A stretch of 64,000 nt of DNA. Source: Guillardia theta CCMP2712. Lineage: Eukaryota; Protista; Cryptophyta. Under the pieces are notes generated by a model. It had not been told where the DNA came from. It made no database searches and worked only from the letters and a program-made list of their open reading frames with translations. Made by a program: the position numbers and the translations under genes. This document shows positions 34,511 to 38,878 of the stretch, one piece after another (the stretch's first letter is position 1; each line of letters begins with the position of its first letter). The DNA lies in the NCBI RefSeq assembly GCF_000315625.1, contig NW_005434626.1:135448-199447 (forward strand). The letters are read 5' to 3'.

Positions 34511-37500
34511 ATGTCGTGCCGATGGTGTGGTGTCGACGTCAAGAGGTTGCTGTACATGGTCGTCTTGTTCGGTCCTCTTCTGCAAGCTCCGTCGCTGGCA
34601 GATATTTCTTTGAAAGGCGATACCTTCGGCCAAGCATGTTTGCCCATCCAACGCGCCGGATGGAGCTCGGGAGGTTTACACAGCATTGCAAGAGACCAAG
34701 GCGAAGTGATCCGCAAATTACCCAATAGCGACGAGACTTTCATCCTCGACTTTGGGAAGAACAAAGGGAAGAAGCTGACAGAAGTGTCCAAAGAATACAT
34801 CTCATGGTTGGTCAACCAGCAAGTGTACAAGAGCAGACCCGCGCTTCATGCTGCTCTGCTGTCCATGCAGATCTTCAGCAAGACCTCACAGTCCTCGTCA
34901 GTGGACAAGCCTAAGGAGGACAAGGGCCATATCAAGGGCCACCAGCACAAGGAATCCTGCAAAGCGAGCTTCCATGATCGGGAAGTACTTGCTAATATGC
35001 CTGGCCTGGATGTCCCACATGCTCTTATCGCTCACCTTCCGTCTGCTCAAGGCTCTGCGTCATTGGCCAGTGACACGACAGTCGAAGTTGGTGACGGCGA
35101 GCACGAGGAGGATCAAGCTGATGCCCCTGACGTCCCGTCGAACTCGCCTGACCCGTTCAAGACCGTCAAGAATAGCGAAAAAGCGAGAGAGGAGGCAGAG
35201 ACAGGGGTTGCTTGCAGCCATGGCAGCAAGATCAAAGTTGAGAGAGCATGGAAGGCAGCGCACTCGCACGTGTCGGGCTGAGGAAGACGACCATCACTTC
35301 CTTCTTCCAACGAACGGGCAAAGTCGAGGGCCTGACGGGCGTCTTCTCGTTCTCGCACACTGAGAATCCTGCGACACCTTCGCCGAAGAAGATAAGGAGA
35401 AGCAATCTTTTGCGAGATGAGCTCAGGTGCGAGACGGGGCAGGGGGAGGATGGGGAAATGAAGAGCGGCAGGGGGAGGGGCAGGGGGAGGGGCAGGGGGG
35501 AGGGGCAGGGGGGAGGGGCGTCGTTTTCATGTGCTTAGGTTCACTTCTAGTTGGATCCGATCGACTCTTCCTCCTCACCTCCGCAACTCTTCTCTCGCTC
35601 CCTCCATCGTCTCAAGATTCGTGCGGCCGCTGCCCTGCGGGTCGGCGACGTACAACGAGCGACTTACGGCTGAACTTGAACTCATCGACTCGTTGGGTTT
35701 CGAAGAATGCTTCCTGCAGGTGAAGTGTAGGGAGGGAGGAAGAGAAGTAGGAGTAGGAGTAGTGGTAGGTACAGGAGAAGGAGGAGCAGGAGGAGCAGAA
35801 GCAGAAGCAGGAGTAGCAATGGGAGGAGGAGGAGGAGGGGGAGGAGGAGAAGCAGGAGGAGGTGGAGGAGCAGGAGCAGGAGCAGGAGCAGGAGCAGGAG
35901 GAGGTGGAGGAGCAGGAGCAGGAGCAGGAGCAGGAGCAGGAGCAGGAGCAGGAGCAGGAGCAGGAGCAGGAGCAGGAGCAGGAGCAGGAGCAGGAGCAGG
36001 AGCAGGAGCAGGAGCAGGAGGAGTAAGACCAGGAGCAGGAGCAGATAGTGTAAGACAGGAGCAGGACAGAGGGAACCAGTGAAAGCTGACATGATGGCGG
36101 CAGGTCCTGAAGTTGCTCGAACTTGCTGAGGGGATGCCTTACATAGTCAGAGGGTCTGCTGCCGGATCTCTCGTGTGCTACATGCTCGGAATTACTCACA
36201 TCGACCCTGTACAAGACTTCTCTCGCTCTTCACTCCTCTCTCCTCTCCTCTCTCCTCTCTCCTTTCTTCCCCCTTCTCTCCCTCTTCTCTTTTCCTTCTC
36301 CCCCCCTTCTCTCCCCCTTCTCTTCACAATCTTGTAGGTCAAAGAGAAAATGTCGCTCAGTCGCTTCATGAACGCGTTGAGAAAAGATCTGCCAGACATT
36401 GACATTGACTTCCCTCACAACGAGGTTCGTCACGCCTCAGCTTCTCTTCGTCCTCGAGCTTCTCACTCCTCCTCCTCCTCCTCGTCCTCCTCCTCCTCCC
36501 TCCCTTTCATCCTCCCTCCCTTTCATCCTCAACCGCTCGTCTGTGCTTTCATCATCCCCCTTTACGTTTCCTTATTTCCTCTTTCTTTCCTCTTCTTTCC
36601 TCCTCCTTCATTTTCCTCGTCTGCATCATCCCTTTCCTTGTTCGTTTCCTCTTGACAACTTCATAGAGAGACAAAATCTTCGAGAGGATTTTCCGTCTTT
36701 TCCCCTCTCAGTCTGCGAGGATTTCAAACCATGTCAAGTTTCGAGAGCGATCGGCCAAACTTGAGTCTGCCAGAAGACTTTCACTACAGTGAGTGACTCC
36801 GTCCCCCGTCCCCCGTCCCCCGTCCCCCGTCCTCCGTCCCCCGTCCTTGCTCATTCCTTCTGCTTCCTCCTGCTGCCCGTGTTTCTCTCACGACCTTGGC
36901 AGCTGCAGGATACCCAGGGGGGTCAGCCCGGGCGAGTTCTTTCAAGGCCCCGTCAAGCTTCGCTACCAGGAGCTGGCCAGCAGCCTCGTCGGTCGCTTCC
37001 GCTGCTACTCTCTGCACTGCGGGGGCCTCGTCATCCTCGATGGGGGAAAGTCGCACGTGCCGGAGGAGCAGCTGGTGAAGGAGACGCGGGAAAGGCCGGG
37101 AGAGCGAAAGTTTCTTGACAACCAGGTCAAGTGGGACAAGAGAGATTGTCAAGAGCGCAAACTTTTCAAACTTGACATCTTGTCAAACCGCGGGCTGTCG
37201 CACTTGTGGAGCATCTCAAGGAAGCATGTGTACGAGTATCCAGCGGACGACCAGCAGACGGCGAAGCTCTTGCAGGAGGGCGACGTGATAGGAGTCATCT
37301 TCTGCGAAAGCCCGGTGAGACAAGCTTCTTCCTCCTCTACCACATCTGTTTACTTACTTGCTCCTCCTCCACCACCTCTTTCCTTCTCTTCGTTGTCTTC
37401 CTTCTCCCTCTCTGGCGTCCAGGCCATGAAGAAAGTTTTGCGCATTCTCGCTCCCTCAAACAGACGAGAGCTTGCGCTCGCTCTCGGTCTCGTCCGACCA

Positions 37501-38878
37501 GCCGCGCAGGTGACCAGCAGCTTCACTTGCTCTCCTCACGTCATGGCAGACGGCCAGGAAGTTCGGGCGTGAAGATCTTGTGCGGGAGACGTTGCTCTTG
37601 TGTTTGACGATGACGTGATCAACATGCTCAAAGTGATGTGCCTCCTCCTCCTCCTCCTCCTCCTCCTCCTCCTCCTCCTCCTCCTCCTCCTCCTCCTCCT
37701 CTTCCTCCTCCTCCTCCTCCTCCTCGTCTCTTCTATTCCCATCGTCCGTCATGCCCTCTGCTTCCTCTCCTCACGCTGCCTTCAACGGCTCACCTTGAGC
37801 AGGAACTGCTCGGGTGCTCAGAGGCCAGCGCGGAGCTACTGAGGAAGGCCTTCATCAAGGGCGACCCTTCCTTCCAGCTCGAACTCGAGCGCGGCATGGC
37901 AGTTGGAAACTTCACTGCGATGCAGGTGGGCAGTCAGCTGGGGGTTGACACCGTGACAGGCGTTTGACAGGTGAGAGATGCTCTGCTGAGGTTGGCCAAC
38001 ACAGACAAGTACTCCTTCTGCAAGAGTCACGCGGTAGTCGAGCAGCAGCTGCTGCTTCCTCCTCCTCTCCCTCACCTAATTTGCTGCCAGATGGGATACG
38101 CTCACCTCAGCTGGGCTCTTGCTTACGAGAAGGCGCACAGCCCAGCTGCTTTCTGGAAGAAGCACGTTGAGATCCTGCTCGGCGATTCAGAATCCGTCTA
38201 CCGTGATCATTCCCCCTCTTCCCTTCTCCTGCTGCTCAGCATACCTCCTTCAGGCTGCTGCTGCTTCTTTCTTCCCTCTTCCCCTGTCTCGTCCTTGCCT
38301 CACCAGCTGACGTCATGCAGGCCCCTGGGTCTACAAGCGCGAGGCCTTGTTGGCTGGTGCCTCGCTGGCGGAGCAGCAGCAGCCGAGCCTGAGAGGAGGA
38401 GAGCTGGAGCCTGTGGAGCAGTTCATGTGCTTGACATGGAGGGGAGGGAGGGAGGTGACGTGCGAGCAGGAGGTGGGGAGTCTGGCTGGGAAGCTCGTTC
38501 CTGCCAGGATGCTTCTTCGATACCAGCAGCAGGTGAGAGTCTGTCGGCGTTGGGTGACCTGATGGATGCGACGCCCAGTGTGACGGGGGAGGAGACGACG
38601 GCGAAGTTTCGGGGAGTCTGGGCGGCAGGAAGGAGGTACAAGAACAAGGTTTTCTTTATCACTCTCGGCGTGGGCAACAAGCAGTTTGTCGACCTGGTCT
38701 GCGACGTTTCTAACCTGCGCGTGGGGATGGAGGACTTTGACGAGGCTGCGTCAGCAGCCTTCCTGTGGGGCGACGGGTAGGCGATGAGCTTGTTGGCGGT
38801 TGACTCACTTCACGCAGCCTCCTGCAACGAACCAACGGCAACGTCATGGTCCTCTGCCGCAACCTCAAGTGGTCTTAG
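34511..38878 (+). CDS. dnaE: Family C DNA polymerase (DnaE / Pol III alpha-like), PHP-less, about 14 spliceosomal introns
   Basis: Spliced exons give DnaE motifs in the correct order: YNERLTAELELIDSLGFEECFLQV, RGSAAGSLVCYMLGITHIDPV, SRFMNALRKDLPDIDIDF, SLHCGGLVI, WDKRDCQERKLFKLDILSNRGL, DDQQTAKLLQEGDVIGVIFCESPAMKKVL, ALGLVRPAA, AELLRKAF, YSFCKSHAMGYAHLSWALAYEKAHSPAAFW. A short OB-like tail follows. Stop TAG at 38876-38878. Confidence 0.92.
35740..36070. repeat. (GGAGCA)n / (GGA)n microsatellite in a dnaE intron
   Basis: Read directly. Similar tracts at 9520-9570, 34320-34425, 37640-37725, 39740-39795 and 62468-62620. Confidence 0.95.

Follow-up and report, generated by a model that had tools for sequence, protein, structure and literature searches.

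Family C DNA polymerases, among them the bacterial replicase DnaE (the alpha subunit of DNA polymerase III, Pol III), are textbook bacterial markers. The element analyzed here is a family C gene of the cryptophyte Guillardia theta, located on the + strand of nuclear scaffold JH993012.1 (558,711 bp; assembly GCA_000315625.1), within a stretch of 64,000 nucleotides that was analyzed as a whole (hereafter the window, to which all positions refer). It is called a mini-DnaE gene, as it encodes a reduced polymerase core. An initial inspection of the sequence (the original prediction) had described it as a bacterial-type replicase, on the understanding that family C is restricted to bacteria and phages. 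Both views had to be abandoned: the protein lacks the modules by which DnaE takes part in the Pol III holoenzyme and falls into a distinct clade, mini-DnaE, that is known chiefly from giant-virus contigs, while the restriction of the family is dated, as Antoine et al. (bioRxiv 10.64898/2026.05.23.727376) report in a preprint of May 2026 that Pol III alpha occurs in nucleomorphs of Pyrenomonadales and in nuclei of Archaeplastida.

The polymerase of that preprint, present in Pyrenomonadales nucleomorphs and in Archaeplastida nuclei, is a cyanobacterium-derived, full-length Pol III alpha encoded by a gene of ~4 kb, which groups inside Cyanobacteria and has beta, epsilon and tau/gamma as partners (10.64898/2026.05.23.727376). 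The G. theta gene is likewise a family C gene from a photosynthetic eukaryote of the same cryptophyte order, and an endosymbiont-derived compartment may be proposed for its product; it differs in being nuclear and PHP-less and in falling within the viral mini-DnaE clade, and hence represents a different lineage. The preprint selected its sequences by a match to PF17657 at E ≤ 1e-40 and a length of 800-2500 aa (10.64898/2026.05.23.727376), while the G. theta protein reaches E = 3.6e-10 for that domain, so that the gene would have been missed by that search. POP (two genes in G. theta; PMC6523293) and PREX are organellar polymerases that are also encoded in the nucleus and are imported into algal endosymbiont-derived compartments; they belong, however, to family A, whose fold is unrelated, include a 3'-5' exonuclease of their own and are not known to work with PCNA. 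The nucleus-encoded DNA polymerase of the cryptophyte nucleomorph has remained unidentified (PMC5443833).

Virus-borne family C polymerases are also found in phages of Streptomyces, Mycobacterium, Listeria and Staphylococcus, whose DnaE-like proteins gave the best fold matches in BFVD, although at an identity of no more than 13-30%. Phage matches that have a name in BFVD and GenBank are 460-1,470 aa in length, and often exceed the ~560-aa core of the G. theta protein, or are split genes. A closer phage-labelled record, LR756508.1, is itself a member of the mini-DnaE family, and its mini-DnaE gene has bacterial-type EF-G, DnaJ, patatin, subtilase and TnpB as neighbours.

The explanation that we favour, and consider reasonably likely when taken as a whole, is that of a mini family C polymerase derived from a pool of large viruses, probably active and possibly tethered to PCNA, with its compartment left open. 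An endosymbiotic origin is probably not involved. A nuclear, virus-type, PHP-less family C lineage appears to be undescribed in the literature searched, and no paper was found in searches for Pol III alpha in giant viruses. The locus represents a second, independent route of family C into eukaryotes, beside the plastid replication system of the preprint; at least one algal lineage has fixed a mini-DnaE core, with introns, and expresses it, and the range of family C thus includes eukaryotes and their viruses.

Gene structure, expression and annotation

The mini-DnaE locus is a genuine, expressed and intron-rich nuclear gene of G. theta, and its standing as a real gene of the mini-DnaE family is highly probable. 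An exhaustive HMMER search with the largest exon, which gave 143 matches among 1.84 billion representative proteins (E ≤ 1e-3), retrieved P0001 (868 aa, 99% identical), whose 90% cluster includes both P0144, a 256-aa NCBI/UniRef model that maps to JH993012.1 of GCA_000315625.1, and P0145, an 883-aa transcript product from MMETSP. The transcript contig L001 (JGI 3300017164; 5,525 nt) was aligned base for base to the window with zero substitutions, and delimited a coding sequence (CDS) from the ATG at 34511 to the TAG at 38778-38780, interrupted by 13 introns of 40-384 nt (median 114), all of them GT-AG (Table 1). The splicing that the original prediction proposed to verify by RNA-seq was thereby confirmed, as was its start codon; the end it gave for the gene, 38878, lies ~100 nt too far, and the host-style introns, estimated at about 14, number 13 within the CDS. 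Its observation that introns are filled with the same repeats as neighbouring genes was borne out: introns 2, 3, 4, 5 and 8 consist largely of microsatellites, of types found elsewhere in the window.

Adjacent open reading frames (ORFs) are eukaryotic and include a voltage-sensor/PTEN-type phosphatase, a Zn2Cys6 protein, a TPR-DnaJ protein, a DEAD-box helicase and an aspartyl protease; a kinesin motor match among them was weak and below the cut-off. With such neighbours and a spliced transcript, the G. theta copy is cellular and not carried on a viral genome. Contamination and recent insertion were likewise rejected, in agreement with the original prediction; the gene has host-style introns and is expressed.

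Splicing had also been expected to restore one open frame, which is the case in the mRNA (an 883-aa ORF in L001) but not in the window, where GGG stands for the GGGG of the mRNA at two sites. These two single G's are the sole differences between mRNA and genome beyond the introns over 5.4 kb aligned, and the window is identical to the public record across the 6,771 bases compared (31511-38281), a span that contains both G runs. Because the assembly is short of one G at each of them, and the first site creates a TGA, the NCBI annotation splits the locus and does not call the polymerase: besides the 256-aa model there is a separate 589-aa model that starts inside intron 2, with no Pfam match on record. 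The concern that automated annotation could overlook the gene was therefore well founded, and the locus illustrates how a polymerase gene can remain split and unlabelled in public annotation through two probable assembly errors. Orthologues keep the mRNA frame across both sites (AHVS[GR]LR[KR]TT... at the first), and the mRNA frame is therefore the conserved one; comparison with these sequences indicates that both GGG sites are probably errors of the assembly. That one gene should contain two errors of the same kind (GGG for GGGG) is odd.

Beyond the stop codon, L001 (2777-5525; window 38780-41794) extends into a convergent downstream gene, whose clearest intron reads CT..AC (41373-41416), as for a gene of the minus strand; either the 3' ends of the two genes overlap or two mRNAs were merged by unstranded assembly.

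Polymerase core, family membership and distribution

In the window, stop-free pieces of the + strand matched PF07733 (DNA_pol3_alpha) in colinear order (profile positions 21-69, 48-85, 86-112 and 197-259), and one of them also matched the finger domain PF17657. As the original prediction had anticipated for the spliced protein, P0145 scored above the cut-offs of both families, with 132.5 bits for PF07733 (cut-off 23.9; E = 2.8e-38) and 39.9 bits for PF17657 (cut-off 22). A family profile built from P0145 and 70 relatives aligned with residues 314-787 of E. coli Pol III alpha (2HNH), placing PDIDID opposite PDFDVD (D401/D403), KLD opposite KFD (D555), RGSAAGS opposite GRGSGAGS and YSFCKSHA opposite YGFNKSH. 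The catalytic motifs PDIDID and KLD had been located exactly (Table 1) and with the correct E. coli equivalents. Across the 71 family members D417 and D419 are invariant and D558 is nearly so, and the G. theta protein retains all the catalytic and near-invariant residues of the family.

The structure predicted with AF2 was confident for residues 300-883 (pLDDT mostly >90), which end in a beta-barrel at 811-882, while residues 1-300 were disordered except for a small domain at 77-121. In Foldseek searches the best matches were bacterial DnaE structures, 2HPI (Taq; 1.5e-21), 7PU7 (Mycobacterium tuberculosis; 3.5e-20) and 2HNH (1e-17), followed by PolC at ~1e-12. The G. theta protein thus has the same Pol-beta-like palm, thumb and fingers as bacterial DnaE, with D401/D403/D555, RGS and KSH conserved, yet the identity is 28-32%, its core measures ~560 aa as compared with ~1160 aa, and its gene is nuclear, with 13 introns and a eukaryote-specific N-terminal extension. 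A PHP domain (PF02811), with its epsilon docking and pyrophosphatase sites, could be detected neither on P0145 nor within residues 1-330 with the threshold relaxed to E ≤ 1, and there was no match to HHH_6 (PF14579, the HhH/beta-clamp-binding region) on P0145. HHH_6 is missing as well in those members of the short family that were scanned or have precomputed Pfam domains, and present in nearly all the bacterial matches listed. In the AF2 model only ~60 residues separate the fingers from the barrel, and the protein terminates right after the barrel, without a tau-binding tail. The OB fold (PF01336) gave no Pfam match on residues 690-883, and the barrel showed weak fold matches to the OB domain of LysRS (probability 0.4-0.9).

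The protein is, accordingly, a PHP-less mini family C core made up of palm, thumb, fingers and a C-terminal beta-barrel. The full DnaE motif series claimed for it is present as regards palm, thumb and fingers, and does not extend to PHP, HHH_6, a Pfam OB match or the tau-binding tail. PHP, the beta-clamp/HhH region and the tau tail are the modules that make DnaE a part of the Pol III holoenzyme, and without them the protein is not a bacterial-type replicase. It is probably an active DNA polymerase.

When the full protein was used as query, 14 matches formed a tight group (558-664 aa, no PHP, E 1e-76 to 1e-109, 33-41% identity), and one more match in that E range, the 757-aa P0165, corresponded to a eukaryotic orthologue; a gap then separates these from the PHP-containing bacterial DnaE, which start at E 1e-43 or weaker. 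In IMG/VR, 316 relatives were found on contigs of up to 1.15 Mb, with matches that cover only residues ~325-860 of P0145, and 19 of the best 80 relatives lie on GVMAG-named contigs. The genomic contexts of four members were giant-virus-like, with Rpb2, TFIIB, RNA_pol_N, D5-type primase-helicase, ubiquitin-conjugating enzyme, protein kinase, Evr1_Alr and RNase HII. GTDB, with one genome for each of 185,579 bacterial and archaeal species, yielded 2 loci, namely a 3.2-kb contig of a Myxococcota metagenome-assembled genome (MAG) and a weak 29% match, and a GTDB scan with P0161, the closest intronless relative, recovered no relatives. Apart from its eukaryotic members, the mini-DnaE clade is thus encountered on the contigs of large viruses, for the most part giant-virus MAGs, and hardly occurs in bacterial and archaeal genomes. 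A Pfam scan of nearest neighbours (one per locus, 65 IMG/VR loci) detected DnaB_C, DNA ligase, PI-PLC and glycosyltransferases, and no hallmark capsid or polymerase genes; the viral assignment consequently rests on the names and sizes of the contigs and on the four contexts analyzed in more depth. In the same 65 loci (within L014-L093), a DnaB_C-type helicase immediately adjoins the polymerase gene in 4 cases and an ATP-dependent DNA ligase in 2, neighbours that hint at a small bacterial- or phage-style replication module within giant-virus genomes.

The G. theta protein shares with its counterparts from giant-virus MAGs (P0006, P0007, P0012, P0171 and the IMG/VR GVMAG contigs L016-L080) the core-only architecture, the C-terminal barrel and 33-42% identity over aa 325-860, and conforms to the family motifs SLHCGG, K[IL]D[ILV]LSNRG and Y[SG]FCKSHA, in the form SLHCGG, KIDILSNRGL and YSFCKSHA common to both. 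The viral genes have neither introns nor a long N-terminal extension; in some subclades the protein starts with a canonical PCNA-interacting protein (PIP) box, and some members are SF2 helicase fusions. By contrast, the gene of G. theta is cellular and spliced, and its product includes a DUF3820-like domain and an internal PIP-like motif in addition to a signal-like peptide. The N-terminal helicase fusion (ResIII/DEAD) characterizes a subclade (P0020, P0038, P0072, and L037, L059, L068 and L073 from IMG/VR), some of whose members lie on GVMAG contigs; P0072 also contains a Hint/homing-endonuclease intein.

Exon-sized ORFs sharing the G. theta-specific stretches WDKRDCQ, HLWGIS and CESPAM were recovered from metagenomes, and intron-bearing orthologues were found on several eukaryote-like contigs: L007-L009 (GC 0.53) and L010 are split orthologues with ~50-55% identity, L096 and L100 (GC 0.61-0.63) are nearly full-length with few introns, and L101/L102 and L103 comprise the N-terminal part. 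The orthologue comparison outlined in the original prediction thus found its material, while dN/dS was replaced by pN/pS on account of synonymous saturation; pairwise values of 0.40 against L096 and 0.45 against L007, calculated with synonymous sites saturated, are consistent with constraint on the protein. No intron positions shared between the orthologue lineages were found, a pattern that fits an intronless arrival followed by separate intron gain.

Phylogenetic trees (quick maximum likelihood with SH-aLRT support and no bootstrap, on a sample without cyanobacterial or red-algal alpha) recovered the mini-DnaE family as one clade (100% SH-aLRT), with a stem length of 1.2-1.7, apart from all sampled bacterial DnaE; the helicase-DnaE fusions were nested within it. 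The three eukaryotic rows grouped together (99% SH-aLRT), as sister (97%) to four intronless metagenome sequences (P0040, P0051, P0041 and P0056).

N-terminal extension and weighing of alternatives

The eukaryotic versions have an N-terminal extension of ~330 aa, which is missing from every viral member. In G. theta and in the L096/L100/L103 lineage it opens with a charged n-region and a hydrophobic stretch of 12-14 residues ending in '...PSLA', with an 11-residue Kyte-Doolittle maximum of 2.27-2.32 in both lineages. The small domain that follows resembles DUF3820/ExoX-C and is kept in L096 and L100-L104; in two orthologues independently it matched PF20600 and PF12843 at E ~1e-3, both below the Pfam cut-offs. 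In L104 (Ga0180007_10255904 447-719) the DUF3820-like motif (TFILDFGKHKGK) is found apart from any polymerase, within a metagenome ORF (GC 0.45) that looks unrelated, and the small domain is therefore a movable module.

Within the otherwise divergent and disordered linker, the eukaryotic orthologues that reach far enough have in common the motif AHV..LR[KR]TT[IM]Tx[FY]F.RTG, in which the KTTITSFF of G. theta is replaced by RTTITQYF or RTTMTEYF (consensus [KR]TT[IM]Tx[FY]F); this PIP-like motif is conserved across three orthologue sequence types. A basic stretch, TPSP[KR][KR].R, directly precedes the core in those orthologues that extend to it. Among the viral proteins, 19 of 109 N-terminal regions have a strict PIP box (QxxhxxAA) 0-4 residues after a Met (e.g., MKQATLDSFF), as compared with 1000 shuffled controls that averaged 0.25 and never exceeded 3; several of the proteins bearing it are encoded on GVMAG contigs. 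From the motifs in both eukaryotic and viral proteins we infer that this branch of family C may use a PCNA-type clamp; coupling to PCNA is a tentative proposal, with somewhat less than an even chance. If the link is true, the locus would be a natural example of a bacterial-type polymerase that has been connected to the eukaryotic clamp system.

A signal peptide is the first step on the way to the complex plastid of cryptophytes and is required for targeting to the nucleomorph (PMC6411479). The signal-like peptide, the basic cluster and the PIP-like motif would together fit a nucleomorph enzyme, and the protein is a concrete candidate for the cryptophyte nucleomorph polymerase. A destination in the complex plastid or nucleomorph is nevertheless rather doubtful, and the more specific proposal that the protein is imported into the periplastidial compartment and nucleomorph and works there on a PCNA clamp as a nucleomorph DNA polymerase must be considered unlikely. 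That proposal would imply, more broadly, a change from the beta clamp to PCNA throughout one branch of family C, in giant viruses as well as in algae. The same virus-derived enzyme could instead reside in the host nucleus, as a PCNA-coupled polymerase for repair, gap filling or translesion synthesis, in which case its hydrophobic N-terminus would lack signal-peptide function. The conserved PIP-like motif and the basic cluster, reminiscent of a nuclear localization signal (NLS), are compatible with such a role, the absence of a proofreading domain suits a specialised polymerase better than a replicative one, and L101/L102 have no hydrophobic N-terminus in the available open frame. Their N-termini may, however, have been cut off by an upstream intron, with a TG microsatellite lying directly upstream, and the n-region/h-region/'...PSLA' layout is conserved at the same place in two lineages, so that a host-nuclear role also appears on the unlikely side.

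As to the origin of the gene, a relic of the cyanobacterial or red-algal Pol III alpha, replicating plastid DNA, would agree with the placement of G. theta in Pyrenomonadales, an order for which plastid-targeted Pol III subunits have been reported (10.64898/2026.05.23.727376), and with an N-terminus that resembles the start of a bipartite plastid signal. The alpha genes of the preprint are, however, ~4 kb long and nucleomorph-encoded, while the G. theta gene is nuclear, contains spliceosomal introns, has neither PHP nor HHH_6 and matches PF17657 only as given above; it groups in the mini-DnaE clade (100%), apart from all bacterial DnaE in a tree that contained no cyanobacterial sequence, and there were no cyanobacteria among those of the 120 matches listed that were bacterial and named, whose names include Bacillota, Bacteroidia and Planctomycetes. 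Such an origin is highly improbable and was rejected on the basis of clade membership among the sequences sampled, architecture and the nuclear, spliced gene. Hardly more credible is a decaying pseudogene, or functionless bacterial or viral DNA, with both frameshifts real: two 1-nt deletions relative to the mRNA do lie inside the CDS of the public assembly, but the mRNA contig keeps an intact frame and differs in the two G runs only, orthologues pass both sites in that frame, catalytic and near-invariant residues are all kept, pN is far below pS, and all 13 introns have canonical splice sites. A transfer in the reverse direction, with a gene ancestral to these eukaryotes captured by giant viruses, would be in line with the weak backbone of the family tree and with the viral PIP boxes, which fit an origin in a PCNA-using cell; it seems improbable in view of the single narrow clade formed by the eukaryotic sequences (99%), as opposed to the far more diverse and numerous other members, of intron positions that differ between eukaryotic lineages, as expected for intronless arrival, and of an N-terminal extension that no viral member has.

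In the virus-derived explanation preferred here, an algal ancestor would have acquired mini-DnaE horizontally from the large-DNA-virus pool, spliceosomal introns would have been gained independently in each lineage, and the N-terminal extension would have been added. The product would act alone, as a single-subunit polymerase that does without beta clamp and tau and without proofreading of the PHP or epsilon type, and the [KR]TT[IM]Tx[FY]F motif would tether it to a PCNA-type clamp, mirroring the canonical N-terminal PIP boxes of viral members. The signal-like N-terminus and then the basic cluster would send it by way of the endoplasmic reticulum into the complex plastid, where it would reach the periplastidial compartment and nucleomorph; the host nucleus is the main alternative destination.

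Several observations weigh against one part or another of this explanation. Regarding the viral source, L011 (P0161) and the L014/L015 group are among the closest intronless relatives by sequence, and the context of L011/L012 (carAB, MarR, EamA, GrpB) as well as that of L015 (curli CsgF/CsgG, FecR, CHASE2 cyclase) is bacterial-type; L011, L012, L014 and L015 have a GC content of 0.46-0.55, and L014 and L015 are filed as viral in IMG/VR. L099, the mini-DnaE of LR756508.1 (35379-60926), belongs to a 484-kb 'uncultured phage' record and shows 35.8% identity at 95% coverage, and the BFVD fold search returned only phage DnaE, with no entry for this protein from a cultured giant virus. The sister group of the eukaryotic clade sits on 3-kb contigs of no assigned origin, for which context look-ups (P0040 and P0051) were uninformative. 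As the backbone of the family tree is poorly supported, it is the breadth of distribution, rather than a resolved nesting, from which the direction of transfer is deduced. Regarding the gene and its product, expression is documented by one RNA-seq data source, and the assembly itself contains the two frameshifts. The assessment of the signal peptide is based on visual inspection and hydropathy, L101/L102 show no such N-terminus, and the residue after the putative cleavage site, which bears on the choice between stroma and periplastid space, is D in G. theta and L in L100. Finally, the first position of the PIP-like motif is K/R where the canonical PIP box (Q-x-x-[ILMV]-x-x-[FYW]-[FYW]) has Q.

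Feature coordinates and other observations in the window

The features of the gene are listed in Table 1.

Table 1. Coordinates of the mini-DnaE gene of G. theta and its features in the window.
Feature	Position	Strand	Basis or remark
Whole coding span, ATG to TAG	34511..38780	+	14 exons, 13 GT-AG introns, 883 mRNA codons; transcript L001 against window; protein P0145 (MMETSP)
Exon 1 (aa 1-305): eukaryote-specific N-terminal extension, with frameshift site 1	34511..35426	+	
Signal-peptide-like N-terminus: MSCRWCGVDVKR / LLYMVVLFGPLL / QAPSLA	34511..34600	+	hydropathy; putative
DUF3820/ExoX-C-like domain (aa 77-121; F[IKR]LDFGK[NH][KR]G...Y..W)	34739..34873	+	
Frameshift site 1: assembly GGG, mRNA GGGG; yields TGA 35279-35281 that ends the NCBI 256-aa model	35275..35277	+	
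PIP-box-like motif KTTITSFF (aa 259-266)	35284..35307	+	conserved in orthologues; PCNA binding putative
Basic NLS-like cluster PKKIRR (aa 292-297); PRRTR in orthologues	35383..35400	+	putative
Exon 2: polymerase core begins (YNERLTAELELI...FLQ)	35551..35719	+	
Intron 2: (CAGGAG)n at 35772-36044	35720..36103	+	
Exon 3: nucleotide-binding motif RGSAAGS (36149-36169)	36104..36208	+	
Intron 3: CT-rich repeats at 36217-36323	36209..36337	+	
Exon 4: catalytic PDIDID (36392-36409); D417/D419 = E. coli D401/D403	36338..36424	+	
Intron 4: (CTC)n and 16-mer repeat at 36466-36530	36425..36666	+	
Exon 5: palm/thumb	36667..36788	+	transcript alignment
Intron 5: (CCGTCCC)x7 at 36799-36846	36789..36902	+	
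Exon 6: SLHCGG ... KLD ... CESP; third catalytic Asp in KLD (37168-37176); D558 = E. coli D555	36903..37314	+	
Exon 7: fingers, VRPAAQ	37423..37509	+	transcript alignment
Exon 8: contains frameshift site 2 (37584-37586)	37550..37632	+	
Frameshift site 2: assembly GGG, mRNA GGGG	37584..37586	+	in exon 8
Intron 8: (CCT)x28 at 37641-37725	37633..37802	+	
Exon 9: fingers	37803..37925	+	transcript alignment
Exon 10: terminates in YSFCKSHA (38010-38033), counterpart of E. coli YGFNKSH	37971..38033	+	
Exon 11	38091..38202	+	transcript alignment
Exon 12	38321..38426	+	transcript alignment
Exon 13	38470..38532	+	transcript alignment
Exon 14, with stop codon; C-terminal beta-barrel (aa 811-882; 38513-38774) encoded here and in the end of exon 13	38579..38780	+	AF2 strands

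Elsewhere in the window, an Rfam scan gave no match. Between 54600 and 60500, ~16 kb from the polymerase gene, the GC content drops from ~0.52 to 0.34-0.47; on the minus strand of this stretch, which is possibly an insert of foreign or mobile origin, lie three long ORFs without introns (596, 271 and 419 aa), none of which has a Pfam match. At 15044-15817, (TGC)n is repeated ~256 times inside overlapping long ORFs, with strongly AT-skewed flanks. An ORF of 986 aa at 6513-9473 resembles voltage-sensing phosphatases in its architecture: a CBS domain and an ion-transport (voltage-sensor) segment are present together with a PTEN-like dual-specificity phosphatase and a PTEN C2 domain.

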